Assembly: GCF_902713615.1 (NCBI RefSeq)
Contig: NC_052147.1
Coordinates: 65,077,097 to 65,141,096 of the forward strand
Source of the DNA: Scyliorhinus canicula
Taxonomy: Eukaryota
DNA: 64,000 nucleotides
Direction of reading: 5' to 3'
The notes under the pieces were generated by a model. It saw only the letters and a list, made by a program, of their open reading frames with translations. It was not told the DNA's origin and did no database searches. Shown piece after piece: positions 9,945 to 62,914 of this stretch (positions within the stretch are counted from its first letter, which is position 1; the number at the start of each line of letters is the position of its first letter). The position numbers and the translations under genes were made by a program.

Positions 9945-12065
9945 AAATTCTTCCACAGACCCCAAGAGGCCGACAGCGAACCCAGGGACACGACCAATGA
10001 ACCGGAACAGCAGACCGCGAGATCTGCAGTGCAGCAACCGAAAAGGAAAGAGTCAAATTGGACCCCTCCGGAAGGCCGCTGCCCTAGACTCGACATGTAT
10101 GCTCAAGCCGTCAGAAGTCGTGTCAATGCCAGATTCATCACTCGCAATCACAAGGCAGCCTCAAACGTCACCCAAGCACAACGCAACGCCATCCGCACTC
10201 TCAAGACCAACCGCAACATCGTCATCAAACCAGCAGACAAAGGAGGGGCCACCGTCATACTGAACAGAACAGACTACTGCAAAGAAGTATACCGACAACT
10301 CGACAACCAGGAACACTACAGGCAGTTACCCGCAGATCCAACCAAGGAACACATCCGCCAACTCAGCAGACTGATCAAGACCTTAGATCCAGACCTTCAG
10401 AACACCCTACGTGCTCTCATCCCACGTAATCCCCGCATTGGAGATCTCTACTGCCTCCCGAAAATACACAAGGCCAACACACCAGGCCGTCCTATCGTTT
10501 CAGGCAATGGGACCCTGTGTGAGAACCTCTCTGGCCACATCGAGGGCATCTTGAAACCCATCGTACAAGGTACACCCAGCTTCTGTCGCGACACGACGGA
10601 CTTCCTACAGAAACTCAGCACCCATGGACCAGTTGAACCAGGAACATTCCTCGTCACAATGGATGTCTCGGCACTCTACACCAGCATCCCCCATGACGAC
10701 GGCATTGCTGCAACAGCCTCAGTCCTCAACACCGACAACTGCCAATCTCCAGACGCAATTCTGCAACTCATCCGTTTCATTCTAGACCACAACGTCTTCA
10801 CCTTCGACAACAAATTCTTCATCCAGACGCACGGAACAGCCATGGGGACCAAATTTGCACCTCAATATGCCAACATCTTCATGCACAAGTTTGAACAGGA
10901 CTTCCTCACCACACAGGACTTTCAACCGATGCTATACACCAGATACATCGATGACATTTTTTTCCTTTGGACCCACGGCGAGACATCACTGAAACGACTA
11001 CACGATGACATCAATAAGTTCCATCCCACCATCAAACTCACCATGGACTATTCTCCAAATTCAGTTCCATTCTTGGACACACTCGTCTCCATCAAGGACG
11101 GTCACCTCAGCACCTCGCTTTACCGCAAGCCCACAGATAATCTCACGATGCTCCACTTCTCCAGCTTTCACCCGAAACACATTAAAGAAGCCATCCCCTA
11201 TGGACAAGCCCTCCGTATACACAGGATCTGCTCAGACAAGGAGGAGCGCAACAGACACCTACAGATGCTGAAAGATGCCCTCGTACGAACGGGATATGGC
11301 GCTCGACTCATTGATCGACAGTTCCACCGCGCCACAGCAAAAAACCGCACCGACCTCCTCAGAAGACAAACACGGGACACCACTGACAGAGTACCCTTCG
11401 TCGTCCAGTACTTTCCTGGGGCGGAGAAACTACGACATCTTCTTCGCAGCCTCCAACACATCATCAGCGAGGATGGACATCTTGCCAAGGTCATCCCCAC
11501 ACCCCCACTACTGGCCTTCAAACAACCGCGCAACCTCAAACAAACCATTGTTTGCAGCAAATTACCCAGCCTTCAGAACAGCAACCACAACACCACAAAA
11601 CCCTGCCAGGGTAATCTCTGCAAGACATGCCAGATCATCGACATGGACACCACCATTACACGTGGAAACACCACCCACCAGGTACGCGGCGCATACTCGT
11701 GCGACTCGACCAATGTAGTCTACCTCATACGCTGCAGGAAAGGATGTCCCGAAGCGTGGTACATTGGCGAGACCATGCAGACACTGCGACAACGAATAAA
11801 CGGGCATCGTGCGACTATCAACAGGCAGGACTGTTCCCTTCCAGTTGGGGAACACTTCAGCAGTCAAGGACATTCAGCCTCTGATCTCCGGGTCAGCATT
11901 CTACAAGGAGGCCTTCAGGAGACGCGACAACGCAAAATTGCTGAGCAAAAACTTATAGCTAAGTTCCGCACGCATGAATGCGGACTCAACCGGGATCTGG
12001 GATTCATGTCGCATTATATTCGGCCCCCACCAACAAGCCTGGACTTGCAGAGGCCTACCGACTGA
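9945..12065 (+). CDS. PLE polyprotein: reverse transcriptase + Cys linker + GIY-YIG endonuclease (N-terminus missing)
   Basis: IKPADKGG, LPKIHK, MDVSALYTSI, GTAMG, RYIDDIF, CQGNLCKTC linker, VVYLIRC..WYIGET; no stops or frameshifts. Confidence 0.92.
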   Translation, partial: KFFHRPQEADSEPRDTTNEPEQQTARSAVQQPKRKESNWTPPEGRCPRLDMYAQAVRSRVNARFITRNHKAASNVTQAQRNAIRTLKTNRNIVIKPADKGGATVILNRTDYCKEVYRQLDNQEHYRQLPADPTKEHIRQLSRLIKTLDPDLQNTLRALIPRNPRIGDLYCLPKIHKANTPGRPIVSGNGTLCENLSGHIEGILKPIVQGTPSFCRDTTDFLQKLSTHGPVEPGTFLVTMDVSALYTSIPHDDGIAATASVLNTDNCQSPDAILQLIRFILDHNVFTFDNKFFIQTHGTAMGTKFAPQYANIFMHKFEQDFLTTQDFQPMLYTRYIDDIFFLWTHGETSLKRLHDDINKFHPTIKLTMDYSPNSVPFLDTLVSIKDGHLSTSLYRKPTDNLTMLHFSSFHPKHIKEAIPYGQALRIHRICSDKEERNRHLQMLKDALVRTGYGARLIDRQFHRATAKNRTDLLRRQTRDTTDRVPFVVQYFPGAEKLRHLLRSLQHIISEDGHLAKVIPTPPLLAFKQPRNLKQTIVCSKLPSLQNSNHNTTKPCQGNLCKTCQIIDMDTTITRGNTTHQVRGAYSCDSTNVVYLIRCRKGCPEAWYIGETMQTLRQRINGHRATINRQDCSLPVGEHFSSQGHSASDLRVSILQGGLQETRQRKIAEQKLIAKFRTHECGLNRDLGFMSHYIRPPPTSLDLQRPTD

Positions 12066-15305: not shown

Positions 15306-15640
15306 ACCTACATTAAGAATAATCTTTTCCGAAGGCCTTCTTCCGGGAATGTAAACCACACCCTCCCCCCCCACCCCCCCACCCCTGCCATTTAGAAAAT
15401 TACATCTGTTTCAGGTAATGGTGTTTTGAAGAACATTGTATTTTCCAGGAACCAATTAATCTTGTTCACGGGATGATTTTCATTTATCATTAAAAATGAT
15501 TAATATTTCTTCGGGATGTGTCTACAAAATATGCCCAGGAGGGTATTCCAGGAACAGCACCAGGCATACCTTAAAAATTAGGTGCCCACCTGGTGAAGCT
15601 ACAACACACGACTACTTGCATGTCAACAGCGTAGCAGCGA

Positions 15641-16678
15641 AATGGGTGGAGGAGCTGGGTGAGGAGATTGAGGAGGGGACATGGGCGGATGCCCTGGAAA
15701 GGGTGAACTCCTCCTCTTCATGTGCAAGGCTTAGCCTCATACAGTTTAAGGTACTGCATAGGGCTCATATGACCGGGACAAGGATGAGCCGGTTTATTGG
15801 GACCGAGGACAGGTGTATTAGGTGCTCAGGGAGCCCAGCAAACCATGTCCACATGTTCTGGGCATGCCCAGCGCTGGGGGAATTTTGGAAGGGTGTAGCA
15901 AGGACGGTATCGAGGGTGGTAGGATCCAGGGTCAATCCAGGCTGGGGACTCGCAATATTTGGGGTTGCAGTGGAGCCGGGAGTGCAGGAGGCGAAAGAGG
16001 CCGGTGTTCTGGCCTTTGCGTCCCTAGTAGCCCGGCGGAGGATTCTTCTTCAGTGGAAGGATGCGAGGCCCCCAAGGGTGGAGGCCTGGGTCAACGATAT
16101 GGCAGGGTTTCTTAAATTGGACAGTAAGAAGTCTTACAACACCAGGTTAAAGTCCAACAGGTTTGTTTCAAACACGAGCTTTCGGAGCACTGATCCTTCC
16201 TCAGGTGACTGGAGAGATATACCTCTCCAGTCACCTGAAGAAGGAGCTGCGCTCCGAAAGCTCGTGTTTGAAACAAACCTGTTGGACTTTAACCTGGTGT
16301 TGTAAGACTTCTTACTGTGCTCACCCCAGTCCAACGCCGGCATCTCCACATCTTAAATTGGAGAGGGTGAAATTTGCCCTAAGGGGGTCAGTGCAGGGGT
16401 TCTTCAGGAGATGGCAACCATTCCTAGATCTCCTGGCAGAACGGTAAAAACAAAAGGTCAGCAGCAGCAGCAACCCGGGGCGGGGGGGGGGGTTATCTCT
16501 TTGTTTTTGTTTTGGGTTGAATATCTGTTTTTTGCCAATGATGGGCATTAATTTATTGTTTCTCTTTTGTATTTACGGCGGTGGGGGGGGTTCTGTTTTT
16601 TTTTGTTCTTAGAATTTTCTGATATTGTTTCTTTTTTGTGAAAATGTGAAAATTTGAATAAAAATTATTTTTTTTAAA
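15641..16678 (+). mobile_element. L1/Tx1-clade LINE 3' end
   Basis: QFKVLHR and CCHC CIRC..HMFWAC motifs, AATAAA and A-rich end; about 16-bp TSD AACAG(C/T)GTAGCAGCGA (15625-15640, 16679-16694). Confidence 0.85.
16121..16351 (+). mobile_element. PLE pseudo-LTR fold-back insertion (96-bp inverted arms + 33-nt tail)
   Basis: Arms 16121-16216 and 16223-16318; TSD CTTAAATTGG (16111-16120, 16352-16361); the L1 frame resumes after it. Confidence 0.92.
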
Positions 16679-37481: not shown

Positions 37482-38774
37482 TTAAAGGCTGGTATTGGCA
37501 GTCTCTGATTTGGGTACAGCAGGCTCAGACACAGTATCGGGTTGTCCATCCCTGCAGAAGAGCACAGCTGGGTTTTTACAGGCCCACATTGCAACGTCCC
37601 CATTTGCAGGGCTGGAAGTAGACATCTGGCTGCCGGAACCTTGTCGATTGACATAGCGATCCCTTATCTTGTCCACCCTGCTCCTGGCCTCGTGGCTCTG
37701 GCTGGACAAGTATGCGGTGATGTTTCTAGTCCTGTAGCCATCTTCCCTATTCCTCCCCAAAAGCATGGAGATGTTGGGGTTCCTCGTGGCGTAGATGAGT
37801 GGATTGAGGGCTCCGTTGGCCCAGGCCAGCCAGATGGCCACAGTGTCCATGATGGGGGTGAAATGGAAGTTGCCAGTGGCAGTGATGATTCCCATGACAC
37901 AATAGGGTCCCCAGCAGCAGATGATGAAGACGATCATGATCAGCACAGTTGTGGCCGTCCTCATCTCACTATAGAAGCGCAGTAGATGGGCGTAGGTGGT
38001 GACGGGACGGACCCGAATCTCTGACAGCCTCACTGTTTTACAGATGTTGTAGTGGCAAAAGCACATCAAAGAGAAAGGCAGAAGGTAGCAGATGACAATC
38101 AGGGTGATGCTGTAACGTGTGCCCATTCTGGAACTGCCCGAGTGGAAGATGTACATGCAGTGGTAGAAGCCCTTCTTGTGGACAACCAATGGACCATGGG
38201 CTTGTGTGATGAGATACCAGGGGAAAGAGAAAAGGGCTGCAGTCAGCCAGACAGCAACCAACAGCTGGGTGGCCCTACGTCGGCTAATCTTCTCCTGGGG
38301 CTGCCTGACGATTGCATAGTAACGATCAAAAGAGATGAGAGTCATGGTGAGAGTGGAGATGATCCCAAAGCAAGAGTTGAAGAAGCCGTTGGCGATGCAG
38401 AACTGGTCACCGAAGATCCAAATCCCCTCCTGGGTGAAGAGCATGATGAAGGAGAAGGGTACACACAGCAGGGCAGTCAGGAGATCAGACAGGGACAGGG
38501 ACATGATAAAGGCATTGGTCACTGTCCTCAGCTGCTGGTGTTTGATGATCATCACTATGACGGCTGAATTGCCCAGACAGGACAGCAGGAAAATGAGCAG
38601 GAGGATGAGAGCTTTGGAAGCCATGGCCATGCCATAGAGCAGGGAGTTAGGGTGAGGCTGGTCACTGGCTCGGTCCTGCTGAGCAGCCCCAGTTTGGTTG
38701 CTGGTGACTGTGGTGTCGGAGCCGTTGGCTTCTGTGAGATTGTATAACAGTGGAATCTTGGTGGAAAGATCCAT
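37482..38774 (-). CDS. GPR135: G protein-coupled receptor 135 (orphan class A GPCR), intronless CDS, 430 aa from the first in-frame ATG after an upstream UGA
   Basis: 7 hydrophobic segments; GN, LSLSD, DRY, CWGPY, NPLIY; GPR135-typical [10 protein letters not shown] and [15 protein letters not shown]; adjacent to L3HYPDH as in other vertebrates. Confidence 0.96.
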
Positions 38775-39019
38775 TGGGCTGAACAACACGTTCACAAAGT
38801 GGAAGATTCATTTCTGGCCCTGTCCTAACAGCGATACACAAAGGTCGATAGATGTGGCTCCAGATGTACACAGGTTACAGGTCATGGTGCCTGGTTGCGG
38901 CTCAGGTTGCAGAGGCTCCAGTGGAGAAACCCTCGCACCAGCATCCCCATCACTTGCTGAATGTCTATGCATAATGCCCCACTGCTGCGTCAATATCTCT
39001 TTAAACAGTAGGTGCAACC

Positions 39020-46597: not shown

Positions 46598-46723
46598 TTA
46601 TCGGAGAAGAAACCCGTCTTTCAGATCATCATCATCTTCCACGTAAAAGCTTGCTGTGCCCGTGTAATGTGCTTGTCCTGATACTTCCACTATAACAGCT
46701 TTGAAATCGCCACATTTTGTTTC
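46598..46723 (-). CDS. L3HYPDH: L3HYPDH orthologue exon 5 (ETKCGDFKAVIVEVSGQAHYTGTASFYVEDDDDLKDGFLLR*)
   Basis: TTCCCAG acceptor, phase 0, family C-terminal D..D.L..GFLL motif, TAA stop. Confidence 0.93.
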   Translation of the reverse strand, partial: ETKCGDFKAVIVEVSGQAHYTGTASFYVEDDDDLKDGFLLR

Positions 46724-48103
46724 CTGGGAAAAAATAAATTTTTAGCAGCCTTGTCACAATGTTGCTCATGGTCAGTTGGCAGATAATAAAACAGCCGTTG
46801 CTGTATAAATGTAACAGGGCAAGTGACGCCAAAGCCTATGCTATATACTAAAACTTTAATATCACTCCAACTTGGAATGTAATAACAATCAAAAATGTCC
46901 AGTCGACCCAATCTATCCTCCTATGATAACCCTGCCATTCCAGACATCAGTCTGGTGATTCTTTGTTGCACATCCTCTCTGGCACTCTTCCAGGTTAAGG
47001 ACTCAAAAGCTCCAGTAGGCTTGTCAGTAGATTTCCCTTTTCTAAATGTTGACTTTAACTAATCTCACTTATATTTTCAAAGTGCCCTGTTATCACATAT
47101 ATAGACATTAGCATTTTACCTATTACTGATTTTAGGTGAAGCAGTCTGTAATGCTCTGTTTTCTCCTTCCCTTTTTTTAAATAGAGAGGTTACATTTGAC
47201 ACCCTCCAATCTGCCAGGTGTGGAACTTTGAGAGTACTAGCGAAACGCTGACCTGAAGAGAATGACGGCACTACTGTTCTTATGTATTGTCATATTAATC
47301 AAACATTGTGTAGGAGGTGAACTGCATACTAACACCTTAATGTACAAGTCTCACTCGTACGCCGAGAGGGTAAATAAATCCAGTTGTTGGGATTGTACAC
47401 AAATTCCCAGATGTTTGGGGGAGGACATCCCTATTTGTGCGACCTATCCCATTCACTAGTAACGAGATAGCAGAATGGGCTCTAAGATGAAATAGTACAG
47501 GACGTGGTGAAGATACAGAATATGCTAGATTGGATATCAGCTGGATACGATATGAATAGGTTTGAGGGAAGGTGATGGCCTAGCTTTAATGTAACATGTC
47601 AACCGCTCGGTTTGATCCTTCTCAATTATACTGGAGTCCCAAAAGGAAGTATATGTTTTAAGAAACATAAAACATATGGGACCACTCAGTAGGCATGAGT
47701 CAGTGTGATCAGACCTTGAATTAGCAACCCTCTTGCATCTCACAGCTAAAGGATTATTGATCTTTGATTGGTCAGGAGTTGAAAATCAAACTAGTGGAGG
47801 CTCTTGGGAAGGAGATCCTATCAGAATAATGATGATTGATAGTAGAGAAAACCTGACCGCAAATAACGGCACATATTTTATCTGTGGCCATAAGGTTACC
47901 AGACAATTGGGAAGGCTCCTGCTATTTGGGATATGTAGTCCCTTATGTGCGCCACGTTCAGCAATTGCAGGACCATCCACATCATAGGACAACACAAAGT
48001 ATTATGACATGGGCACAAATGCTGGGAATAATGATACCACCATTAGGAATAGCCACTAATGCATACGAACTACGTGAACTACAAGGCATCCTTGAGCAGG
48101 TAT

Positions 48104-48262
48104 GAAATGGATGAAAATGAAAATCCCTTGTCACAAGTAGGCTTCAAATGAAGTTAGTGTGAAAAGCCCCTAGTCGCCACAATCCGGCACCTGTTCGGGG
48201 AGGCTGGTACAGGAATTGAACCGTGCTGCTGCCCTGCCTTGGTCTGCATTCAAAGCCAGCGC
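48104..48262 (-). mobile_element. Short tRNA-derived SINE inserted in env
   Basis: Same family as 21346; flanked by GCAGGTA/GCAGATA. Confidence 0.8.
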
Positions 48263-48549
48263 AGATAGCTAATGATACTGCAGAAGCTGTTAACCAGGTA
48301 GAAACTGAGATGTTGCCCTGCAGAATAGAATGACCCTTGATTTCTTGTTAGCTGAAAAGGAGCTCTGATTGGAAGTGACTGTTGCACGTACATCCCTGAT
48401 AACGCAGAGAAAATTGATAATCTGGTGGATCACATTCGTAGAGAGGTAACAAGATTACATGAAAATGAGGGATGGGACTTTGGCTTTGAGTGGTTAGGAT
48501 CATTCGGACAGGATCGTTCGGACAGAAGATTGTGTTCTGGATTATAATC

Positions 48550-48743
48550 ATGATGTGGAGATGCCGGCGTTGGACTGGGGTGAGCACAGTAAGAAGTCTT
48601 ACAACACCAGGTTAAAGTCCAACAGGTTTGATTCAAACACAAGCTTTCGGAGCGCTCCTTCACCTGAGGAAGGAGCTGCGCTCCGAAAGCTCGTGTTTGA
48701 ATCAAACCTGTTGGACTTTAACCTGGTGTTGTAAGACTTCTTA
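48550..48743 (-). mobile_element. PLE pseudo-LTR fold-back insertion in env
   Basis: 13-bp TSD CTGGATTATAATC (48537-48549, 48744-48756); hammerhead motif at 48661-48695. Confidence 0.92.
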
Positions 48744-49065
48744 CTGGATTATAATCGCCATTGTAATCGTAATTGTTGTATGGTTGCTGTTTAAATGGTG
48801 TACAGGGTATTGTACAAACATGGGAACAGCCCTAGCAGCATTGCTTCCTTGGTACCAGCCTCATAACATGCAAGGAACTGTCATACGTCCGTTCCCCTTA
48901 CATTCTAAATCGCTGGCTTTGAAAGCAGACCAAGGCAGGCCAGCAGCACGGTTCGATTCCTGTATCAGCCTCCCTGAACAGGCGCTGGAATGTGGCGACT
49001 CGGGGCTTTTCACAGTAACTTCATTTGAAGCTTACTTGTGACAATAAGTGGTTTTCATTTCATTT

Positions 49066-49290
49066 ATTTTTTATAAATTTAGAGTACCCAATTATTTTAT
49101 CCAATTAAGGGGCAATTTAGCATGGCCAATCCACCTAGCCTGCACATCTTTTGGGTTGTGGGGGTGAAACCGACGCAGACACGGGGAGAATGTGCAAACT
49201 CCATACAGACAGTGACCCAGGGCGGGGTTCGTACCTGGGTCCTCAGCGCCATAGGCAGCAATGCTAACCACTTTGCCACCGTGCTGCCCC
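49066..49290 (-). mobile_element. V-SINE (A-rich tail type)
   Basis: Same family as 8249 and 59428. Confidence 0.82.
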
Positions 49291-50879
49291 TTCATTTCAT
49301 TTATAAGCCACCCTTCTCTATGGAGGACATGATACCAGAACTGTTCCAGAATCTACAGAATTTTGGAAGATGACAACCAACATATCCACTATTCCCATGG
49401 TACCCTGGGATATAGATTATCAGGCCCTGGGGCTTTATCGGCTTTCAGTCCCATTAATTTCCTTCAATTCCTCCTTCTCACTAGACTTTGGTCCCTCAGC
49501 ATTTCTGGGAAGTTATTGGTGTCATCCTCCGTGAAGACAGAACTTAAGTAGTTGTTTAATCGCTCTGCCATTTCCTTGTTCTCGATTATAAATTCTGCTC
49601 TTTCAGACTGTACTTCACTAATCTTTTTTCTTTTTACATATTTAGGGAGGCTTTTACAGTTCACTTTCATATTACTTGAAAGTTTACTCTTGATGGAAAT
49701 CAGCTATTTCTGATAGGTAAAAGGCCATTTTAATGTAAATATTAAAGCCCAGTCTTTAATACCCATTTTAAAAGAAGTATTTCAGTATTCATAAAACACA
49801 CAAAACACACAACTTACAACAGAGGTACAAAGCTTGACACATCAACAAACTAATTGAAGATAAAAACGGCATTTTTACTGACAATATGAATGGACTATTG
49901 TTTCAATGAACAGATTTCAAAGTAAGTTTCATATTAAGAAATGAGCTGTACCAGTAATCAAGATCAAGGTCAAAATAAGCACCATAGCAATATGAAGCCA
50001 CCATTGTTCAGAATATGGATAAAGTGAAAGTCAGCAGAAAACCAGTAAAACCCAGACTTGATTACAGCACAGTAAAACATGAAACATTTAAAACTTATGT
50101 TGCACTTTGAGGATTGACAGTTAACCATCCAATCAAATGTATTTGTAACTCACCCAAACCAATTAGGACGACATAGAGGTATGGACAGATGGCCTCAGAC
50201 TGATAACATTTTCCTTAAACACGAGAGTTCAGACAGCCATTTTCTATCCAGGTTCACTCTATACTTTGATCAAACTACTTGCTTCCTTATTTTCACCTTT
50301 CCACTCTAACTCTTGACGTTCGCGCAAGCTGTTTTGCTTTAAGCAAGAAACCACTTCTGTATTATTTTTGAAAGTTAAAATTATTCTACAAGTTACTTCT
50401 CTTTAAGTCTTTTGCTGGCAAGGCTTTATTGAGAACAGATTTAAGTTTCTCTCAATTGTAATCAGTAGAGGCAATAAAAGATTCTTACTTACATCTGAGA
50501 AGTGCAACTCAAATTTCTACCAAGTTCTGTAGTGTTTGCGAGACTGCACTTGAACAGCATGGTAGATCTCTACAATTCTCATACTCTATTTTTCCCCTCT
50601 TAATCCTTGTTTGCTGGGTTCAGAATTGCTCCCAACCCTCAGGTTTGATACTTCTTCCACCAACTTTATACAACTCCACTTTGGGTCCAATACTATCCTT
50701 ACTTTCTTTTGTAAGCCATGGTTGAGCTGCTTTTCTTGTATAGATCTTTTCAAGAAGACCCTGTCCAATCTGCAGACTTGGGGTCACCTAGAGCATTCCA
50801 GTCTCCAACACGAGACCAACTTGCTTCTATTTTTGCTAATGTTTCTTATTCTCAGTTAAAACTATTTCTGAAATGACTC

Positions 50880-53860
50880 TCCACCCATACCCTCCTTCCT
50901 CTCGTGTCCATTGCTGGAAAGATCTATCCCCCAATTCACTTACAACTGCACTATCAAAATATCAACTATCTAACCTCTGGCCCTCTATTTGCCACAAGGT
51001 TTCCACAGCTCCTTATCTACTCAACTACACCCTCACCTCCCTAACCCTAATTTGGCCTTTCTCCCTGTTAATACTCTCAACTCTGCTTCTTTCAGTCCAA
51101 GGAACATAGACTTGAACTGATACGGCAGATAACTGGGCCAGCCATTCACCATCAGATCTGCTTGAATCATACAGGGCACTATCAGGTGCTGCTCTAAAGC
51201 TGCTCATTATTCCAGCAAATTCTGGAAAAAAAAAGATAACCCTCAGCTTCTTTTCTCCACTTTACGCTGGCCATACATTTGTGGCTCTTCCACCCTCACC
51301 TCCATGAATAAACGTGAAGAGCTCAGGACTGCTTTTGATGGTCTTGATCAAAGTGACAGTCAGCTGCCTATGCCAGAGGTAAACCACCCCACCTCATCCT
51401 TCTCGACATGTCAGAAATATTTGACACAGTTGACCATGCTATCATTCTCCAACGACGTCCCACTGTCGTCCAACTGGGTGGGACTGCTCTCACCTAGTTT
51501 CATTCCCATCTATCCAATTATCAGCAGACTCTCATTTGTAATGGCTGCTCTTCCCACTGCTGCATCATCCACTGCTGTCTCCCAAGGATCTATCCTATCC
51601 CTATTTCCCATCTTTGATAAGGTCCCTCATGGCAGACTGGTACAGAAGGTGGAGTCATAGGGGAACAGAGGTGAACTGGCAAGATGGATACAGAACTGGC
51701 TCGGTCATAGAAGACAGAGGGTAGCAGTGGAATGGTGCTTTTATGAATGGAGGGCTGTGACTAGTGGTCTTCCATAGGCATCAGTGCTTGGATAATCACA
51801 AACAGTGCTGTTTGTAGTACATATAAATATATAAATGATTTGGAGAAAAATTTAATTGGTCTGATTAGTAAGTTTGCAGATGACGCAAAGATTAGTAGAA
51901 TTGCAGATGGCGATGAGGACTGTCATAGAATACAGCAGGATATTGATTGGTTGGACACTTGGGTGGAGAGATGGCAGATACAGTTTAATCCGGACAAATG
52001 TGAGGTAATTCAATTTGGAAAGTCTAATACAGGTGGGAAATATACAGTAATATACGATACATCGGCCAGGCATCGAGTATAAAAATTGGCAAGTCATGCT
52101 GCATCTGTATCGATCTTATTTAGGCCCCACTTGGAATATAGTGTTCAATTCTGATCGCTATACTACCAGGAGGATGTGGAGGCTTTGAGAGGCTACAGAA
52201 GAGGTTTACCAGGATGTTGCCTGATATGGACGGCATTAGCTATGAGGAGAGGTTGGATAAACTCGGTGTTCTCACTGGAACGATGGAGATTGAGGGGTGA
52301 CCTGATAGAAGTCTACAAACGTATGAGGGGCGGACAGAGTGGATAGTCAGAAGCTTTTTCCCAGGGTGCAAGAGTCAGTTACTAACGGATATAGGTTTAA
52401 GGTGCAAAGTTTAGAAGAGATGTGTGAGGGAAGCATTTTACACAGAGGGTATTGGATGCCTGGAACCTGCTGTCGGAAAGTGGTGGAAGCAGGTACTATA
52501 GTGACATTTAAGGAGCGTCTTGACAAATACACGAATAGGATGGGAATAGAAGGATATGGACCCTGGAAGTGCAGAAGGTTTTAGGTTAGACGGGCAGCAC
52601 AGTTGGCGCAGGCTTGGAGAGCCAGTTCCTGTGCCGTACTTTTCTTTGTTCTTCTTTGTACAGGCTGCGCCTCGGCATCATCATTCAGGAGGCACAGCGT
52701 TTGATTCCCAGGTATACTAACAACACCCTGCTTTATCGCACCACTATTACTAAATTATCAGACTTTCTCCAATTAAATTTTGGGAAGACAGAAATTATTG
52801 TTTTGTCCCAGCTCCAAACTCTATTCCCTCAACACTGACTGACTCCCTCCCCCTGGCAATTGTCTGACTAAACTAGTATGTTTCCAATGTTGGTGTCATA
52901 TTTGACCCCAAGGTCAGCTTCTGACCACACATTCGGGCCATTGCCAAGACAGCCTATTTTCACCTCTGCAACATCACCAAACCTGGCCTCTGTCTCAATT
53001 CATCTTCTGCCGAAACTTTCATTCACTTTTGTTAGCTCTTGATTCAATTATTCCAATGCACTCCTGGCCAATCTTCCATATTTTACACCCCTAAATTTGT
53101 CACCCAAAACTCTGCCCCCCCCCCGTCTTAACTTCATAAAATTTATAGTGCAGCAGGAGGCCATTCAGCTCATCGAGCCTGCACTGGTCCTTGGAAAGAG
53201 CACCCTACTTAAGCCCATACCATCACCCTATCCCGCAACCCAACCAACCAAATTAGCATGGCCAATCCACCTAACCTGCACATCTTTGGACTGGGGGAGA
53301 AAACCAGAGCACCCGGAGGAAACTCACGCACACACGGGGAGAATGTGCAGTCTCCGCACAGTGACCCACATCAGAAATCAAACCCAGGTCCCTGGCATTG
53401 TGAAGCAACAGTGCTAGTCACTGTGCTACCGTGTCGCCCAACTTCACAAGGTTCTATTCACCTAATATCCATGTGCTTGTTTGTATTTGCTACCAGTCAC
53501 AAAATGTCTTAATTTGAAAATTCTCATCTCCCCATGGTCTTTTCCCTCTCTATCTCTAATCTCTCCAGTCCCATAATCTTCTGAGATAACTGCATTCATC
53601 TCATTCTCGCCTCTTTAGCACATCTCACTTTAATCACTCCACCATTGTTGGCTGTGCCTTCAACCACCTGGATCCCAAGCTCTGGAATTCTCTCTCTCAA
53701 CCTCCCTTAAAACACTCCTTAAAAGTGCCGCTCTGGCCAAGCTTTACATCACCTGACCTAGTATTTCCTTGTGTAGGTCAATGGCATAATTCTCCAGTGA
53801 AGTACATTGGGACATTTTATAGGTGAAAGGTGCTTCATAAATGTAAGTTGTTTCTTGTTA
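50880..53860 (+). mobile_element. Old L2 LINE interrupted by a CR1/HER1 (about 51612-52657) and an HE1 SINE (about 53135-53438)
   Basis: L2 RT remnants (FDTVDH, SQGSIL, LQLNFGKTE) and ATAAATGTAAGTTGTT end; CR1 SKFADDAK..FNPDKC. Confidence 0.75.
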
Positions 53861-54717
53861 TTTGTTGGTCCGTCATTTTTGAACTATATAGGTTTACAAA
53901 TGGCTGTTATTAACGCTGCTATCTTATTGGACAAATTCTCAAGAGTTCACACACCAAGATCTGAAAGCATTAACAACTTCAGATTTATTCAAACTAAGGA
54001 AAGCATGCATCCCAACACAAAAACGAAGGCTTGGCCATCTCTGCTGTATGTGGCAGTACAGAACTTTATAAATTTGGTCTACATCACGGTTCTGTATTTC
54101 CCTGTTTACCTGTACCTTTGACTAATTTTGGTAACTATGATATTTTTTACATATTGCATTGCTTTCTGTGTATCCTTAATGAAATTTTTCATAATACATT
54201 AGATTTTTAATTAATTGTAAACTACTTTTGGCATTTTCAAGGCCAGCTAGATTGTTTGAAGTAATTCTCACACCATATAAAAATATACTTGCTCCTTATT
54301 GCAGCAGCCTAAACCTTTTCTGCCATGTTTAGTGAGTAATTGGCAGCTGAGTACCTCCATCTTCATGCCATTAGATGTATTTCACTGCTGAAGCCGTCTT
54401 TGACGTTCTGTTACAACACTGTCTGTATCTACAGCAGGAGAGTAAATCACAGCTTTTGGATTCTGCATTTAACAGTCCATGTTTACACTCTGCTGTCTCT
54501 TTATTCCATAATGGTGCATGCTGCTCGCGTCATTGTTATTAATACAAGGTCTCGACCAGAAAATCTAAATATTACCCCTGGAGTAAACATTTAGGGTCTT
54601 TATATGAAGGCAAAACATTCATTTCGTGCACTGGTGAAATACAAATTTTTGCACATTTAACTAGTTTTTCTAAATTTGTGCCTACCTGAAAAAAGTGCAA
54701 TTCTGCTTCTTTCCATG

Positions 54718-55097
54718 CATTTGATAAGGTTCCACACGGTAGGCTATTGCAGAAAATAAGGAAGTATGGGATTGAAGGTGATTTAGCGGTTTGGATCAGT
54801 AATTGGCTAGCTGAAAGAAGACGAGGGTGGTGGTTGATGGCAAATGTTCATCCTGGAGTTCAGTTACTAGTGGTGTACCGCAAGGATCTGTTTTGGGGCC
54901 ACTGCTGTTTGTCATTTTTATAAATGACTTGGAAGAGGGTGTAGAAGGATGGGTTAGTAAATTTGCAGATGACACGAAGGTCGGTGGAGTTGTGGATAGT
55001 GCTGAAGGATGTTATAGGATACAGAGGGACATAGATACGCTGCAGAGCTGGGCTGAGAGGTGGCAGATGGAGTTTAATGTGGAAAAGTGTGAGGTGG
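54718..55097 (+). mobile_element. CR1 LINE RT fragment
   Basis: [35 protein letters not shown]. Confidence 0.9.
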
Positions 55098-55636
55098 TTC
55101 GCTCTCACATCACATTTGCTTCTCTTGCGAATCACTTGCAATCTGTTCTAGCTGCTTTGATAAAAATTGGAAATATTTAAAAATGCTAATCAGCAGCTGG
55201 TTTTCCTAAAGTGCTGGGATTATGCAAATCGTCTGAATCACACATTGTCACTTGGGTGTTTCCTAATTGCCTTTTGTACCATTAGCATGCTTATTCTGTC
55301 AACATTGCCATTCACTAGTATTTAAGAGACACTTTTAGGGATTAGTTATTGAGCATTTGTAGCATTCTACATGCCACATCAGCACGTTGTCTAATTTATC
55401 AATTTAACTTTTGTACGAATGACTTTGCCACCTTATCCTAATCCTGCAGATAAGAGAGTGAAACACACTACGCACAAGGAGAAAGAATTGTAGTGTTGGT
55501 TCAGATGCATTTCTGGGCAGTATATTACAATTTTTGATTCAAGGCAGATTGAATGAAGTGGACTGGACAGACCTAGGTTTACTGCTTACTCCATGTAATT
55601 CTCAACTAAGTGAAAATGGAGGTCAACGTACTGATT

Positions 55637-55924
55637 ATAGAATCCCTACAGTGCAGAAGGAAGCCATTGGACCCATCAGGTCTGCACCAACCCTTCGAAA
55701 GAGCACTCATGTCCACGCCCCTTCACACCCCGCCCCATTCCCGTAACCCCATAATCTAACCTGCACATCCCTGGACACTAAATTGCAATTTTGCATGGTC
55801 AATCCACCTAACCAGCACATCTTTGGACTGTGAGGAAACCGGAGCACCCAGTACAGACCCAAGGCTGCGATTGAACCCAGATCCCTGGCGCTGTGAGACA
55901 GCAGTGCTAACCATTGTGTCACCG
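55637..55924 (-). mobile_element. HE1-type V-SINE
   Basis: Head, partial V-domain and tail. Confidence 0.8.
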
Positions 55925-56503
55925 ATGATTAAAGGCTGGTTAAATTTAAATGCTTAGTGCAAAAAACAGCTGAGAGGATAGTTGATTTGGCTCCCTGGTG
56001 ACATTACAAAAAATAACATTGAAACGATTTCCAGGTAATGCAATGGAAAACTTTTACCAGATTGCAGTGTGCAAAATTTAAATTGCATAAGACTTGAGTG
56101 CCACATTGCTGCAAACTGCATTGTATTTACTGTCTTAATAAATTAGATAATTTTGTGCAAGATTCTTCTTTAACTTTGTAATGAAGAAAAAATCTTCCTT
56201 TATTCTTGAGAGATTTGGAATCATTGTTCAAATCTTGTTTAAAATAATTGCATCAATTAAGAAGATTAATTGGAAGAAAATCTTACATGAGCAATTAAAT
56301 GAAATTTCCAATAAATTTAATTTCTGAAGCTTAAGTTCCTACAATTTATGCCGAATACTGTAGAGTGATGCTATAATTTCTAAATATAGTAGTTGTAGAC
56401 TGCTTAATTCAAAATATAAATACTGCTAACTGTTCAGGTTTGGGTTAAAATGTGCGGAGTATTAGGTTTCAAAAAGCAACTATATTTATAATATGTCAAT
56501 CAC

Positions 56504-56641
56504 CTCTATAGCTTTTGCTGTGAAGAGCGAGCTTGTTGGACCACTCTGAAATGTCCTGGTCTGATTCAGATGAATTAATCCTTTGTGGTACTGCAGTGCA
56601 ATACGAGCTGTCACACCCGAGCCACAGGGACTTCTGTCAAC
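56504..56641 (-). CDS. L3HYPDH: L3HYPDH orthologue exon 4 (VDRSPCGSGVTARIALQYHKGLIHLNQTRTFQSGPTSSLFTAKAIE)
   Basis: TTAG acceptor, GTGATT donor, 138 bp, phase 0/0, DRSP motif. Confidence 0.95.
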
Positions 56642-57326
56642 CTAATCAAGATAAGTTAAACAAAAAAATGTCCAAAATGTTTTTATTTATGAATCATATT
56701 TGATCTTTTTAACTTTCAAATGTTTTCCTCAACTGCATTATAAATAATACGTCTGGACCAATTATTTTGACCTTGAATATTAGAAAGTATTAAATGTTGA
56801 TAGACAACATCGCAAGAATGCGAGGGTGCAAGTTCCAACTGTTGTTCAGGTGGCAGTCAGCTTTGTTTTAATCATGACCCTTCGTGTTTGCAGTAGAGCC
56901 ACTCCAGTGAAAATGGCAATTTCTCCTATAATGGATTTCGCTGGAGCTGCCCCGAGTGAGGAAGAAACCGATCAAGCGCAGGAAAATAAGACATGATCAA
57001 AATCGTCAAATTTCAACTGAGTTCATTAATTGCTTTTATACATAGATATTAACTGAATAGGTCTGGAGCGATACGTCCATTCCCATTTATTGTACACAAA
57101 ATGTGATGTACATTTTGATCAATAAACTTTTACTAATTAATCTTTCTTAAAACAAGTCTGATTGGGAATCGCGGCAGAGAAATTGAGCAGATATTTCGTG
57201 ACACTTTATAAGTAGGTCACCATGAAATCACTAAAGATCGCACAATGTTTACACTTCAAGACCTGTTCAAATGTGTGCAGTATGTTTATTGTAACAATGT
57301 TTATTAATCATAGTTACTTTATCTAC

Positions 57327-57449
57327 CTGAGCATCTGCAAAAACACAGATATTTGCTGTTGGCTCTTCAGAAAATTCATCTTTTCCATCAGTTAATATGG
57401 TGCCATAGAGGAAGGCAAGATCTTCACTGTCAGGGTGGTGGAGTTTAAC
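57327..57449 (-). CDS. L3HYPDH: L3HYPDH orthologue exon 3 (VKLHHPDSEDLAFLYGTILTDGKDEFSEEPTANICVFADAQ)
   Basis: TTTTACAG acceptor, GTAGAT donor, 123 bp, phase 0/0. Confidence 0.95.
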
Positions 57450-58285
57450 CTGTAAAAAAAATTATTACTGAGTAGGGTTTGATATTAACTTATTGGATCA
57501 ACTTATTGGATCAATAGCAATAGTTCTTCTCCGTAGATATCAGCAGCGTCAACTGAAATGAAATGAAAATGAAAATCGCTTATTGTCACAAGTAGGCTTC
57601 AAATGAAGAGGCTGTTATGGGAATTGAACCATGCTGCTGGCCTGCCTTGGTCTGCTTTCAAAGCCAGCGAATTAGCCCTGTGCTAAACAGCCCCAGCTGT
57701 GCTAAAAGCCCCAGCTAATTTTAATATTTATCATATTTAAGTGCTCTTCAGAATCTCAAAGTGTGTACCAGGTAAATTAATTAGAACAAAAATAGTTAAA
57801 TCAGGATTAAACAAAAAAATAATAAACCCGATGGTAGATTTATTTGAAGTAACGCATCCTTCAAAGGCCAAGAGTGGACTGAGTGTGAATTCTGGGCATA
57901 CCATTTTGTGGGTAATGCCTCCTGGTGGAAATGGTTTGAACTGACATTGAATGACACCAATCTGCTCAGTTGCCCACAGAATAGAATTCTTCTGCACACA
58001 CTGGATTATTGGACTAAACGTAAATGTAAGTAGTATATATGTTCCCTGTATTATTTTTAGAAATGAAGGAACCACATCTATTTTTTTAAATTCAGAATTC
58101 TTCATACATCCCTGGAGCCTGGGGAGGGAAAAAATGACTCGAAAGGGAAGGAGAGCTCTTTCCCACCAGAATTAACCTGTCAAGATTTAATGGGCTGGAC
58201 TGTACAGAGCGAGGTGGGGAACATACCACCCCGCCCTTGGTAGAAAAGTCGGTCACTTTAAAAAAGGTTGCCATGCATGGAAAAG

Positions 58286-58603
58286 AATCATAGAATCCCT
58301 ACAGTGCTATTTGGCCCATCGTGTTTGCACTGACCCTTTGAATGAGCCATGGCCACTCCCCCATACACCCTTCCCTATCTCCATTATCCCCATAACTCAA
58401 CCTGCATATCCCTGGACACTAAAGGCAATTTATCTTGGCCAATCCACCTAACCTGTACAACTTTGGACTGTTGGAGGAAACCGGAGCACCCGGAGGAAAC
58501 CCACGCAGACACTGGGAGAAAGTGCAAATTCCATACAGAGTCACCCAAGGCTGGAATTGAACCCAGGTCCCTGTGTGGCAGCAGCACTAACCACCATGCT
58601 GCC
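58286..58603 (-). mobile_element. HE1-type V-SINE
   Basis: Head, V-domain and tail. Confidence 0.85.
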
Positions 58604-59427
58604 CTGGATGTCCCACCCTTGAGAGCTGCTAGCCAATCTGATTGGCTGACAACTGAGTTGTCCCACAACACCAGAAGCAAATGGTGGCCACTGCTAGGAC
58701 CTTAAGGGATTCCCTGGGAAGTGTCATAAATGCAGGACTAAAACGTCAGAGCTTTTTGGGAAGGGAAGAATTAGGATAACAATAAGAAGGGAAGGTTGGG
58801 AGCTCAGGTCGGACAACATCTTTGTTAGGCAGAGATGCCCTTGATGTGCACAAGGCATGCCCCAAAGACGTGATTATGGTGGTGATGGAGGTGGAATTAG
58901 ACCCTTAATTGGCCTCAGTAAGCCAATGAACAGGCAGGCTGGCTGATGCCTTACTTGCCCACTACGATAAGGGACAATTGGAGAGGGGGAGGTGGACTAG
59001 CTGTCACATTTTACATGCTCCGACCCCGTCTCAAACATTCTGGCAGGCAGAGCTGTAAAATGCCCACACTTCTGTGAGCAGTAGTGCTCAGTGTACATTA
59101 AGGAATTATTTCATTTGGTGGTTTCATGCATGCTACTGATGGATATTTGTGCCAGTCAGCTTTCAAACAGAATGAATTTTGTAATAACTGCTGAATTTCC
59201 ATCCAAATACACACTAGTAAAATACTCCATCCATTTGCTAAGCGTTGTTTGGAATATCTTTCTGGATCGCAAAACCACGTAACAATAGTACTGCATCTGA
59301 CGATTTAATACAGTTCATATAAATTTTGAGAGTTCACTGGATATTCATTGACATTTTAAATCCAACTGGAAGGGGTAGGTGAAAAATGGGAATCACTCTT
59401 TCAGCTCATCCAAATAGGGGTGACCGG

Positions 59428-59647
59428 AATGGCGGCACTGCGGCTAGCACTACTGCCTCATGGTGCTGAGGTCCCGGGTTGGATCCTGGCCCCGGATCAC
59501 TGTCCATGTGGTGTTTGCATATTCTCCCCGTGGGTCTCACCCCCACAACCCAAAAAGATGTGCAGGATAGGTGGATTGGCCATGAAAAATTGCCCTTAAT
59601 TGGAAAAATAAATAATTAGGTACTCTTAATTTTATATTTAAAAAAAC
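59428..59647 (+). mobile_element. V-SINE with poly(A) tail
   Basis: 14-bp flanking duplication CAAATAGGGGTGAC. Confidence 0.8.
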
Positions 59648-60663
59648 AAATAGGGGTGACTGGCAACCTATGCCTGGATCACAATTAGCAAGATGAGCCC
59701 AGGGCTCAAGAATGCAATTTGAAAAATGGGTACACAAACTTTTGTAGGAACAGACTTGGATCCCAATTTGGTATTGGGTGGCGATTTTTCACAATTTAGC
59801 TTCCAAGCAGTCTTCATAATTTAACACAAGAGAAAGATATTAATCCTGATGTAGGGGTTTCACAGAGAATTAATACTGCTGCAAGACCCATAGGTTATCA
59901 GATATTACAATCAGAGTAAGAATGCAAGGGAACACAGGCCAGCTGATCAGACAGAGATGGAGTTCAGTGCAGAGAACATATAGCCTGGTATAGCCTAGGG
60001 AAAACAGTTCCAAAGTGATGTATTTGTATTGATGTGAAGATTATTAAAATTAACTTTGATTTTATGCCTGGTTAGAAACTTTAAATTGTATTCCGTCAGA
60101 AACTGAAAAATTCAATCCTGATGCAAATAGTGGTAACTCTCTCCAAAATGTATAAGTACAGACTGTGTTAATGCTTTGTGGGATATTCAGAAGTATTTCA
60201 ACCAGATCCTGGTCTTAAATAATGGATTAGTGTCAAGCTTATAAGCGTCGTCGGCGTACTTAGGCAAGTTATGACAATTCCAAACCAGATCACAGATCTG
60301 CAGCAGCTTGACATCCTGCATTGTACCAAAATGTGTGTGAAATTGTTAAGACTTTTGTGTTGAGTTTTCACAAGTGTCTGATCTGTCAAGGTTGAACATA
60401 GAACATATTGGATATTCGCCCAAATTTTCCTTAAGAGCACATTTTTGCCCTTCAATTAGGTCTGTGTGGTAGAATTAAGTAAAAATGTTTTTAGGCGCCC
60501 ATGAATGCCATCACTACATTCTCAGTTTTGTTGAGACAGGAGGGGGTCTATTCTTGAATTAAAAAGACAACATGCCTACACTTTCAGCATCTGTGAAAAT
60601 GAGGGGGCAAAATAAATTTGCAATTAGATTGATCAAGTCAGAATATTTGGCTTCTTCACGTAC

Positions 60664-60833
60664 CAGTGCTTTCACAGCATTAGTTACAGTTGCTGCTGCA
60701 TCTACAAGATCCCAGGTCCTGGAGGAACAAACATCCAAGCCAAAATGATCTGCACTCACAAATGCATAAAAAGCACCTCCATATGCAATATCCACCACAA
60801 TCTTCCCATGTCCTGGTACATCAACAGAAACAT
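60664..60833 (-). CDS. L3HYPDH: L3HYPDH orthologue exon 2 (DVSVDVPGHGKIVVDIAYGGAFYAFV..AVKAL)
   Basis: CTTTCAG acceptor, GTACGT donor, 170 bp, phase 1/0, DIAYGG.FY motif. Confidence 0.95.
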
Positions 60834-60922
60834 CTGAAAGAGAGATCAATAAACTTGTACTGTACATTGTATAGTACCTTTATAGTGGCTCTGATCTAAT
60901 GCACAGATTCTGCTAGTGAGTC

Positions 60923-61145
60923 CAAAGTGAAAATGCTGGAAAATGTCAGGTCTGGCAGCATCTGTAGGTGGAGAAAAGAGCTAATGTTTCGAGTCCAGAT
61001 GACCCTTTGTCAAAGCTTTGACAAAGGGTCATCTGGACTCGAAATGTTAGGTCTTTCCTCTCCCTACAGATGCTGCCAGGCCGGCTGAGACTACCAGCAT
61101 TTTCTCTTTGGTTTCAGATTCTCGCATCCGCAGAAATTTGCTTTT
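60923..61145 (+). mobile_element. Second-family PLE-derived palindromic insertion
   Basis: 58-bp perfect palindrome at 60987-61044 inside longer arms; 16-bp TSD ATTCTGCTAGTGAGTC (60907-60922, 61146-61161). Confidence 0.85.
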
Positions 61146-61709
61146 ATTCTGCTAGTGAGTCTTTTGTTGCATGTCCAGGAGACTGGTGCAACACCAAGAG
61201 AAAAAACATAAATAACAGTTTCCAACGCCCGAAAACATTTTAACTTTATTGAAGGCACCAAAGATGTTACATGGGTTTGTTTATGACATGATTCTCGACA
61301 TTTGGCACTGAGCATGGACACTTGTGAACAATTGTTTATGAATTTAAAATTAATGGCAGGAAAATTGTGTACATGGTGCACAAATTTCCAAGCCAGCTAC
61401 AATTTGGAGGGTAGATCTGTGCCAGGAGGAGGAATAGCTATTTTTTAAAATGAGGTGCTGACATATTGAAGTTCCAACGCAGTTAATAACACCAAAAACA
61501 GGCAAGGAACTAAATGATCCCACACTGAATTAATCACAGAAAATATCTGTATTCCTACCCAATCCATGACAAACCAGCAGAGAAATGCACCCTTGAGTTC
61601 TCGGTCCTCAATCCCGGTAGTGCCCAACCCATGTAATACAGGAGTCAAGGTTGCTGTGATTGCAAGCACCATCCACACCAAATAAATGATCAGAGATGTG
61701 AGGCATGTG

Positions 61710-61910
61710 ACAGAAAATGTTGAAAACACTCAGCAGGTCTGGTAGTATTTGTGGAGAAGGAAACAGAGTTAACATTTCAGGTTGATGGCCTATTTTGATG
61801 TCAGCTCATTGAGCTGAAACGTTAACTAACTAGGTTTCCTTCTCCACAGTTACTGCCAAACCTGCTGTGTGATTCTAACATCTTTTTTTTAAATTTTAGA
61901 TCTGTAGCAT
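61710..61910 (+). mobile_element. Older decayed PLE-derived hairpin
   Basis: Inverted arms related to 60923-61145; GAAACGTTAAC remnant. Confidence 0.6.
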
Positions 61911-62007
61911 ACAAAAAAACGTGAGCAGCACAGCGGTTAGCACTGCTGCCTCACAGCACCAGGGACCGGGGTTCAATTCCAACCTTGGGCGACTGTACGC
62001 AGGTTAG

Positions 62008-62265
62008 GTGGGGTTACGCGGATGGGTGGTAGGTGGGGTTACGCAGATGGGTGGGAGGTGGGGTTATGCGGATGGGTGGGGGGCAGGTGGGGGTTACGCG
62101 GATGGGTGGGGGGCAGGTGGGGGTTACGCGGATGGGTGGGGGGCAGGTGGGGTTACGCGGATGGGTGGGGGCAGGTGGGGTTACGCGGATGGGTGGGGGG
62201 CAGGTGGGGTTACGCGGATAGGTGGGGGGCAGGTGGGGTTACGCGGATGGGTGGGGGGCAGGTGA
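62008..62265 (+). repeat. G-rich minisatellite (about 28-30 bp, GGTGGGGTTACGCGGATGGGTGGGGGGCA) expanded inside an HE1 SINE (about 61923-62335)
   Basis: About 9 tandem units derived from the SINE's GGTGGGGTTAC segment. Confidence 0.9.
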
Positions 62266-62430
62266 GGTGCTCTTTTGGAGGGTCAGTGCAGATGCGATGG
62301 GCCGCTTGGCCTCCTTCTGTACTTGTAGGGATTTAATGGATCCACCCTGGGACATTAAAACAGCAGTTGACTACAGGGTGTATAAAGACTGCTGCTGCAG
62401 AGTCGTGCCCAGCTCCCCTCGCACTCCCAC

Positions 62431-62914
62431 CTGTAGCGAAGACGAAGGCGGGGACGCTGTGGAAGCGGACCCGGCCGCTCTTGCCCTTGTCGTACTGCAC
62501 GAAGGCCCGGACCAGGCCGCAGGGACAGTGGATGTTGACCTGACTTTCGGGGGAGCTGGGCTGGGCGATCAGCCCGTAGTCCAGGGCGAAGCGGCCGAGC
62601 GCCAGGACGGCGTGGCCGCACATGGTGCTGTAGCCCTGGTTGTGCATGAAGAGGACGCCGAAGTGAGCGTCCGGCCGCTCCGAGGCCACCAGCAGCGCCC
62701 CGTACATGTCCGAGTGGCCGCGGGGCTCGAAGAGCAGCCTCCGCCGCAGGCCGTCCAGCCGCTCGCGCACGTAGCGTCGCTTGCTCAGGATGTCCTCCCC
62801 CAGCACGGGAGGGAAGCCGTCGGTGATGATCCGCAGCGGCTCGCCGCCCGTGTGCATGTCCAGCACCGACACCGCGGCGCCGATGCCCGGCGGCGCTGTC
62901 AACGGCAGCTCCAT
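62431..62914 (-). CDS. L3HYPDH: L3HYPDH orthologue exon 1 (proline racemase superfamily; MELPL..DMHTGGEPLRI..EPRGHSDMYG..STMCGH..VPAFVFAT)
   Basis: CpG-island exon, ATG at 62914, donor G|GTGGGA; the five exons sum to 1041 nt = 346 aa + stop. Confidence 0.96.

Follow-up and report, generated by a model that had tools for sequence, protein, structure and literature searches.

A second active-site cysteine in L3HYPDH of the catshark Scyliorhinus canicula and other cartilaginous fishes: a candidate trans-3-hydroxy-L-proline epimerase

A 64,000-nucleotide (nt) stretch of the genome of the catshark Scyliorhinus canicula (contig NC_052147.1, forward-strand positions 65,077,097 to 65,141,096; this whole stretch is called the window) contains the gene L3HYPDH, whose product is annotated as a dehydratase of trans-3-hydroxy-L-proline but carries a cysteine, Cys265, at the second of its two catalytic positions. 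The question raised by this locus is whether such an enzyme would still dehydrate its substrate or would epimerize or racemize it instead. The racemases and epimerases of the superfamily use two cysteines on opposite faces to carry out a 1,1-proton transfer; in the dehydratases one base takes the alpha-proton and its conjugate acid assists loss of the 3-OH, a single-base syn-dehydration in which the opposite-face threonine is unable to reprotonate (PMC4113996). Members of the family are classified by whether cysteine or threonine occupies this second position (PMC3958920; PMC5144071). The answer developed here is that the catshark cysteine is genuine, is shared by all cartilaginous fishes sampled, and probably makes the enzyme a 3-hydroxyproline epimerase, although the probability is modest. 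To our knowledge, vertebrates are credited with no proline racemase or hydroxyproline epimerase, and L3HYPDH is regarded as a dehydratase throughout.

L3HYPDH lies on the minus strand of the window (62914-46598) in five exons (62914-62431, 60833-60664, 57449-57327, 56641-56504, and 46723-46598) that join into 1041 nt, corresponding to 346 amino acids and a TAA stop codon. All of the introns are GT...AG, a codon is split only at the exon 1/2 junction, and the window contains no N bases. The sequence-only reading of the locus had described a 346-residue protein with intact splice sites and frames; the same coordinates were recovered, and the spliced protein is identical (100% over 346 amino acids) to S. 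canicula XP_038636260.1, which is RefSeq isoform X2 of trans-L-3-hydroxyproline dehydratase. As had also been anticipated, automatic annotation applies the dehydratase label, and the database names for chondrichthyan copies all read dehydratase.

Exon 1 (62431-62914) begins with the ATG at 62914, in an open frame that has no in-frame ATG further upstream, and encodes residues 1-161 plus one base; it includes the DMY motif with the site 1 residue Tyr71, Gln93 (CAG at 62638-62636), and the segment HNQGYSTMCGH, in which the catalytic Cys99 (TGC at 62620-62618) lies within STMCGH (residues 96-101). Exon 2 (60664-60833, 170 nt) holds the segment AYGGAFYAF, the counterpart of human Tyr192, and exon 3 (57327-57449, 123 nt) includes the site 5 residue Phe255 and terminates in NICVFADAQ. 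Exon 4 (56504-56641, 138 nt) opens with VDRSPCGSGVTARIA; near its start is Cys265 (TGT at 56626-56624), inside DRSPCGSGVTARIA, which matches the racemase signature DRSPCGxGxxAxxA and in which DRSPCGSG corresponds to residues 261-268. Both cysteines and the signature were thus found as first reported. Exon 5 (46598-46723, 126 nt) includes the TAA stop. The Pfam profile Pro_racemase (PF05544) matches exon 1 with E 3e-47 and exon 4 with E 2e-9, each above the 27-bit cut-off. A second RefSeq isoform, X1 (354 amino acids), diverges past residue 305, with exon 5 read in another frame (window approximately 46635-46835, minus strand); this form, which lacks the conserved strands at the C-terminus, is probably a non-productive product of splicing. 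Intron 1 carries a G-rich 29-bp minisatellite next to the downstream end of exon 1 (62006-62268; 9.3 copies, 92% match).

Alignment with solved structures (7QPO, 6R76, 7PB3, 6J7C, and 1W61) places Cys265 opposite Thr273 of human L3HYPDH and the second catalytic cysteine of the proline racemases. The comparison with human Cys104/Thr273 that had been drawn from the sequence holds in the 7QPO alignment. Together, Cys99 and Cys265 fall on the catalytic cysteine pair of 1W61, 7PB3, and 6J7C, giving a Cys/Cys dyad where the characterized Cys/Thr (or Ser/Thr) dehydratases have threonine at the second position. The remaining features of the PF05544 superfamily are present: the profile match, the MCGH and DRSPxGxG motifs, and a predicted two-domain pseudo-symmetric fold. 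The AlphaFold2 (AF2) model of the catshark protein has a predicted local distance difference test score (pLDDT) of 94.8, and its Foldseek TM scores are 0.88-0.94 to 7QPO and 6R76 and approximately 0.91 to 1W61 (TcPRAC) and 6J7C.

The distribution of the cysteine was followed among the best 120 matches to a catshark exon 1 query, in which DRSPCGSG is present in 11 of 11 chondrichthyan sequences; among the bony vertebrates with a readable motif, 72 have DRSPTGSG and one, a cavefish, has alanine. The Thr-type bony vertebrates include coelacanth, lungfish, bichir, gar, and teleosts, and the sampled tetrapods (mammals, birds, amphibians, and a turtle) all have threonine. Opening of the 90% identity clusters extends the chondrichthyan sample to approximately 24 species in all, covering catsharks, lamniforms, carpet, bullhead, and cow sharks, skates, stingrays, mantas, sawfish, electric ray, and the chimaera Callorhinchus; each has both HNQGYSTMCGH and DRSPCGSG, and neither serine nor threonine was seen at the second position. 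Judged from this sample, cysteine at the second catalytic position is fixed across Chondrichthyes. The Cys/Cys arrangement that had been proposed for this animal is therefore real, but it is not a trait of a single animal: it extends to the whole class and recurs in gastropods, bivalves, and a fungus. The alanine-bearing cavefish sequence, an L3HYPDH-like protein of Sinocyclocheilus anshuiensis (P0102; DRSPAGSG), has no recognizable STMCGH and may be a decaying duplicate.

That the cysteine reflects a codon error, or that the gene is a pseudogene, is so improbable that it can be set aside. No support for such an artefact was found (the C-terminus of isoform X1 is frame-shifted and that of X2 is intact), and the open reading frame (ORF) and splice sites are intact in a protein with a confidently predicted fold. 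At position 265 the genomic codon is TGC in Callorhinchus, TGT in Pristis, and ACA in gar, and a skate protein cluster includes a 2.5-kb contig from a public sequencing run that carries a full, intron-free ORF with a TGT codon; this contig is read as a spliced transcript. For the catshark itself, an exact-sequence look-up of the protein turned up no transcript contig. Because cysteine codons are found in the independent assemblies of approximately 24 species and in the skate contig, a base-call or assembly error is excluded, in agreement with the argument made earlier from the codons themselves.

The gene also shows the marks of an orthologue that has been maintained. Downstream of L3HYPDH in the window is an intact, single-exon gene for a rhodopsin-family G protein-coupled receptor (GPCR) (37482-38795, minus strand; Pfam 7tm_1 E 6e-48), the likely start of which is the eighth residue of the ORF; the closest Atlas clusters carry the name GPR135, which is a lead only. 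The loci of Callorhinchus, Pristis, and Lepisosteus (gar) have a divergently transcribed JAMP-domain gene (JKAMP) upstream, then L3HYPDH, and a same-strand 7tm_1 GPCR downstream, so that the synteny consists of the GPCR inside the window and the JAMP/L3HYPDH/GPCR order at these three other loci. Exons 2-5 are 170, 123, 138, and 126 nt in catshark, Callorhinchus, Pristis, and Lepisosteus alike. By synteny and exon structure, the catshark gene is assigned as a true one-to-one L3HYPDH orthologue. Pairwise ratios of nonsynonymous to synonymous substitution (dN/dS) are 0.16-0.22 among catshark, sawfish, and chimaera and approximately 0.10 against gar; these values, which also weigh against a pseudogene, indicate that chondrichthyan L3HYPDH is a functional gene under purifying selection. 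No second, Thr-type chondrichthyan sequence appears in the match lists seeded with the catshark or Ptychodera protein, down to approximately 64-68% identity; a paralogue more diverged than this may be present in chondrichthyan genomes.

Whether the cysteine was retained from an ancestor or acquired, a point that the sequence-only reading had left to an alignment of orthologues, is answered by the outgroups in favor of acquisition. In a maximum-likelihood tree, gnathostomes (support 96/99) and Chondrichthyes as a single clade (100/99) are recovered, and all non-chondrichthyan vertebrates have threonine. Threonine is likewise found in the hemichordates Ptychodera and Saccoglossus (orthologue P0419), in five echinoderms (a sea urchin, two crinoids, a brittle star, and a sea star), in the brachiopod Lingula, in Haliotis, in one Batillaria copy, in the sponge Sycon, and in the nearest bacterial relatives, which are alphaproteobacterial metagenome-assembled genomes (MAGs) with 57-60% identity to a Mustelus shark query. 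Since the outgroups and all other vertebrates have threonine, the most parsimonious history has a single Thr-to-Cys change, on the chondrichthyan stem, and the derived cysteine appears to have been kept since the chimaera-elasmobranch split in all sampled lineages. The codon change requires at least two nucleotide substitutions, with serine as the sole one-step intermediate from ACY. Cyclostome, amphioxus, and tunicate orthologues were found neither in homologue searches with catshark exon 1, Batillaria, and Ptychodera queries, for which the best-120 lists are dominated by bony vertebrates, nor among the 50% representatives; cysteine in cyclostomes, if present, would make it ambiguous which state is ancestral at the vertebrate root.

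The same replacement has occurred independently elsewhere. The caenogastropods Littorina, Babylonia, and Pomacea, nested within Thr-type gastropods, have cysteine, as do the bivalves Solemya and Mya and the fungus Paraglomus, and two near-identical sequences of one environmental 90%-identity cluster differ in state (P0167, DRSPCGSG; P0281, DRSPTGSG), so that the switch also separates very close relatives. The Cys/Thr position thus appears to be evolutionarily labile within the L3HYPDH-type clade, which tempers the surprise of finding it changed in sharks. The mollusc and Paraglomus proteins resemble the chondrichthyan ones in having undergone Thr-to-Cys change inside this clade and in being annotated as dehydratase-like; they differ in their independent origin, as judged from the tree, and Babylonia and Mya differ further in having phenylalanine at site 1. 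No characterized example was found among the mollusc or fungal Cys-type orthologues. An ancient Cys/Cys paralogue, represented by Saccoglossus P0134 and Batillaria P0189 and P0124, was considered and rejected, as the Batillaria copies fall inside the gastropods and a Thr-type orthologue exists separately in Saccoglossus. The two Batillaria attramentaria sequences are fast-evolving, gastropod-specific duplicates with LARGPCGSG and a first motif that is changed or absent, and a conservative Thr-type copy is also present; P0124 and P0189 may be neighboring genes, to judge from their locus tags, BaRGS_001307 and BaRGS_001310.

The consequence of the cysteine depends on the pocket in which it sits. 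Five positions (41, 93, 265, 332, and 333) separate all chondrichthyans from all sampled bony fish. At position 93, six residues ahead of the catalytic cysteine, glutamate is replaced by glutamine (GAG to CAG); the equivalent human residue 98 hydrogen bonds with Gln267 in the open form and is named Asp98 (PMC9309405), whereas the 7QPO sequence has glutamate there. Glu93Gln was considered as a required partner of Cys265 and rejected: glutamine occurs together with threonine in Amia and the marsupial Macrotis, alanine is found in birds and anurans, and the Cys lineages of molluscs and the fungus retain glutamate. Comparison of the independent Cys lineages shows parallel change at column 265 alone. 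Around it, catshark Tyr71, Met98, the Tyr184-equivalent, Phe255, and Ser267 agree with both human L3HYPDH and Thermococcus litoralis T3LHypD, and the dehydratase ligand shell (human Tyr76, Met103, Tyr192, Ser275, the Asp74-Arg270 bridge, and the site 5 phenylalanine) is kept.

These residues bear first on whether the catshark protein could be a genuine proline racemase, interconverting L- and D-proline, or a racemase of broad proline and hydroxyproline specificity such as Thermococcus litoralis TlProR, which uses a Cys/Cys dyad to act on proline, 4-hydroxyproline, and 3-hydroxyproline. The dyad, the histidine of MCGH, and the aspartate of DRSPC do coincide with catalytic residues in the alignment with Trypanosoma cruzi TcPRAC, AsProR, and TlProR, the fold is shared with TcPRAC (1W61) and TlProR (6J7C) (TM approximately 0.91), and the site 5 phenylalanine is as in proline racemases. 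Site 1, however, is the tyrosine (DMY) found in all 3-hydroxyproline dehydratases, whereas the three aligned racemases have DMF or DQF (TcPRAC Phe102, TlProR Phe62), and phenylalanine at site 1 is assigned to ProR-like enzymes only (PMC4364671). The shark enzyme also has CGSG in place of the CGTG of racemases and epimerases, and in structural alignment it is 67-68% identical to human L3HYPDH and approximately 31% identical to TcPRAC (31-35% for TcPRAC and TlProR together). Some mollusc Cys-type orthologues gained the site 1 phenylalanine and the chondrichthyans did not. A racemase is accordingly an improbable reading of the gene; and since the pocket is of the dehydratase type (site 1 tyrosine, serine in CGSG), epimerization of 3-hydroxyproline is favored over racemization of proline. 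Of the two activities first put forward for the locus, proline racemase or hydroxyproline epimerase, it is the second that the pocket supports. In Babylonia (P0298) and Mya (P0299 and P0149) the Cys-type proteins have changed site 1 from tyrosine to phenylalanine as well, and these enzymes may be shifted further toward racemase specificity than the chondrichthyan enzyme.

What the catshark protein combines, a second-site cysteine within a retained dehydratase-type pocket, is the feature of the epimerase class. The catshark and human proteins share approximately 67-68% identity over the structural alignment (TM 0.88-0.92), together with MCGH, the equivalents of Cys104, Met103, Tyr76, Tyr192, Ser275, and the phenylalanine, and the Cys135/137 pair; they differ in that human Thr273 is catshark Cys265 and human Glu98 is catshark Gln93. 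The human Thr-to-Cys mutant, T273C, is reported to epimerize trans-3-hydroxy-L-proline (Visser, 2012, cited by PMC3958920 and PMC10875296), so the gain of activity mentioned in the sequence-only reading has a basis in these secondary citations. Since the active-site shell is otherwise that of a dehydratase, T273C is the closest experimental proxy for the chondrichthyan enzyme, to which its first-shell active site (dehydratase pocket plus second cysteine) is equal; it differs in being an engineered single mutant of a mammalian protein, the chondrichthyan protein being natural, class-wide, and otherwise different at approximately 27% of positions. A bacterial comparison is offered by PaLhpL (PA1255) of Pseudomonas aeruginosa, which has trans-3-hydroxy-L-proline as its sole substrate, yielding cis-3-hydroxy-D-proline with weak dehydration (PMC5144071, supplement). 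PaLhpL likewise has cysteine at the second catalytic site, but its first-site residue is serine and it belongs to a distant subfamily. The activity class of T273C and PaLhpL would, by analogy, best fit the chondrichthyan enzyme.

Since the chondrichthyan first shell is the human one except at residue 265, we lean, if only slightly, toward chondrichthyan L3HYPDH being chiefly a trans-3-hydroxy-L-proline 2-epimerase, probably with residual dehydratase activity. In the proposed mechanism, Cys99 would take the alpha-proton off trans-3-hydroxy-L-proline, as in the dehydratase, and the thiol of Cys265 on the opposite face would return a proton to the carbanion. The main activity would then be that of a reversible 3-hydroxyproline 2-epimerase, interconverting trans-3-hydroxy-L-proline and cis-3-hydroxy-D-proline, and some irreversible dehydration to pyrroline-2-carboxylate would probably persist, the behavior reported for T273C and for PaLhpL.

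Several points weigh against this assignment. The activity of T273C is known here through the secondary citations named above, and second-shell residues differ from human at approximately 27% of positions, differences that could alter the partitioning between epimerization and dehydration. Second-site-Cys members are still able to dehydrate trans-3-hydroxy-L-proline (PMC5144071, supplement), and because dehydration is irreversible the net flux in vivo could stay unchanged. The long retention of cysteine could also be due partly to the multi-substitution barrier to regaining threonine and not to selection for epimerase chemistry.

Much of this is shared by a rival reading, unlikely but far from negligible, in which the enzyme is still a dehydratase in net effect, with Cys265 either near-neutral or responsible for a reversible side reaction that is drained through pyrroline-2-carboxylate to proline. 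All of the ligand-contacting dehydratase residues are kept, PaLhpL retains some dehydratase activity in spite of its second-site cysteine, several enzymes of the superfamily carry out both reactions promiscuously (PMC4113996), and reversion from TGY to ACN takes at least two substitutions, so that retention alone is no proof of selection for cysteine. Yet the identical single change is reported to make the human enzyme an epimerase; the dehydration kcat/Km of PaLhpL is approximately 6000-fold below that of a dedicated dehydratase, one of another family acting on cis-3-hydroxy-L-proline; further, the cysteine is invariant class-wide in the species sampled.

Two further observations concern the surroundings of the gene and of its family. 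The window contains long ORFs at 10029-12065 and 15496-16305 (both plus strand) that match RVT_1 and, weakly, zf-RVT; they are probably retroelement remnants. Among bacterial relatives, the MAG contig GCA_964504425.1 (L001 484-1527) encodes a protein 60% identical to shark L3HYPDH, and the alphaproteobacterial MAG protein P0445 is 67% identical to the hemichordate Ptychodera protein; such bacterial relatives are as close to animal L3HYPDH as are sponge or mollusc orthologues, a hint that the gene may have passed from bacteria to animals or the other way.

Full-text literature searches, the coverage of which is incomplete, returned no paper in which cartilaginous fishes are tied to L3HYPDH or to proline racemase, nor any description of natural Cys/Cys vertebrate orthologues, the prior report that would have removed the novelty of the proposal. 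Bony vertebrates recycle 3-hydroxyproline by the dehydratase/CRYM route. It is tentatively suggested that cartilaginous fishes, alone among vertebrates, own a native pyridoxal phosphate (PLP)-independent imino-acid epimerase that would convert collagen-derived trans-3-hydroxy-L-proline to cis-3-hydroxy-D-proline (and perhaps L-proline to D-proline), a D-imino-acid branch of collagen catabolism replacing the dehydratase/CRYM route or running beside it. The coupling of such a branch to D-amino acid oxidase, put forward in the sequence-only reading, is conjectural.

Chondrichthyan L3HYPDH is a natural form of a known enzyme type that is clade-wide, derived, conserved, and directly testable: the residue reported to switch the human enzyme from dehydratase to epimerase is naturally switched in a whole vertebrate class, under what appears to be purifying selection. 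If the epimerase assignment is true, family annotation rules should inspect the residue at the second catalytic position; cis-3-hydroxy-D-proline would have a natural source in sharks, rays, and chimaeras; and the group would provide a natural experiment on the evolution of the Cys/Thr switch, replicated in molluscs and a fungus.

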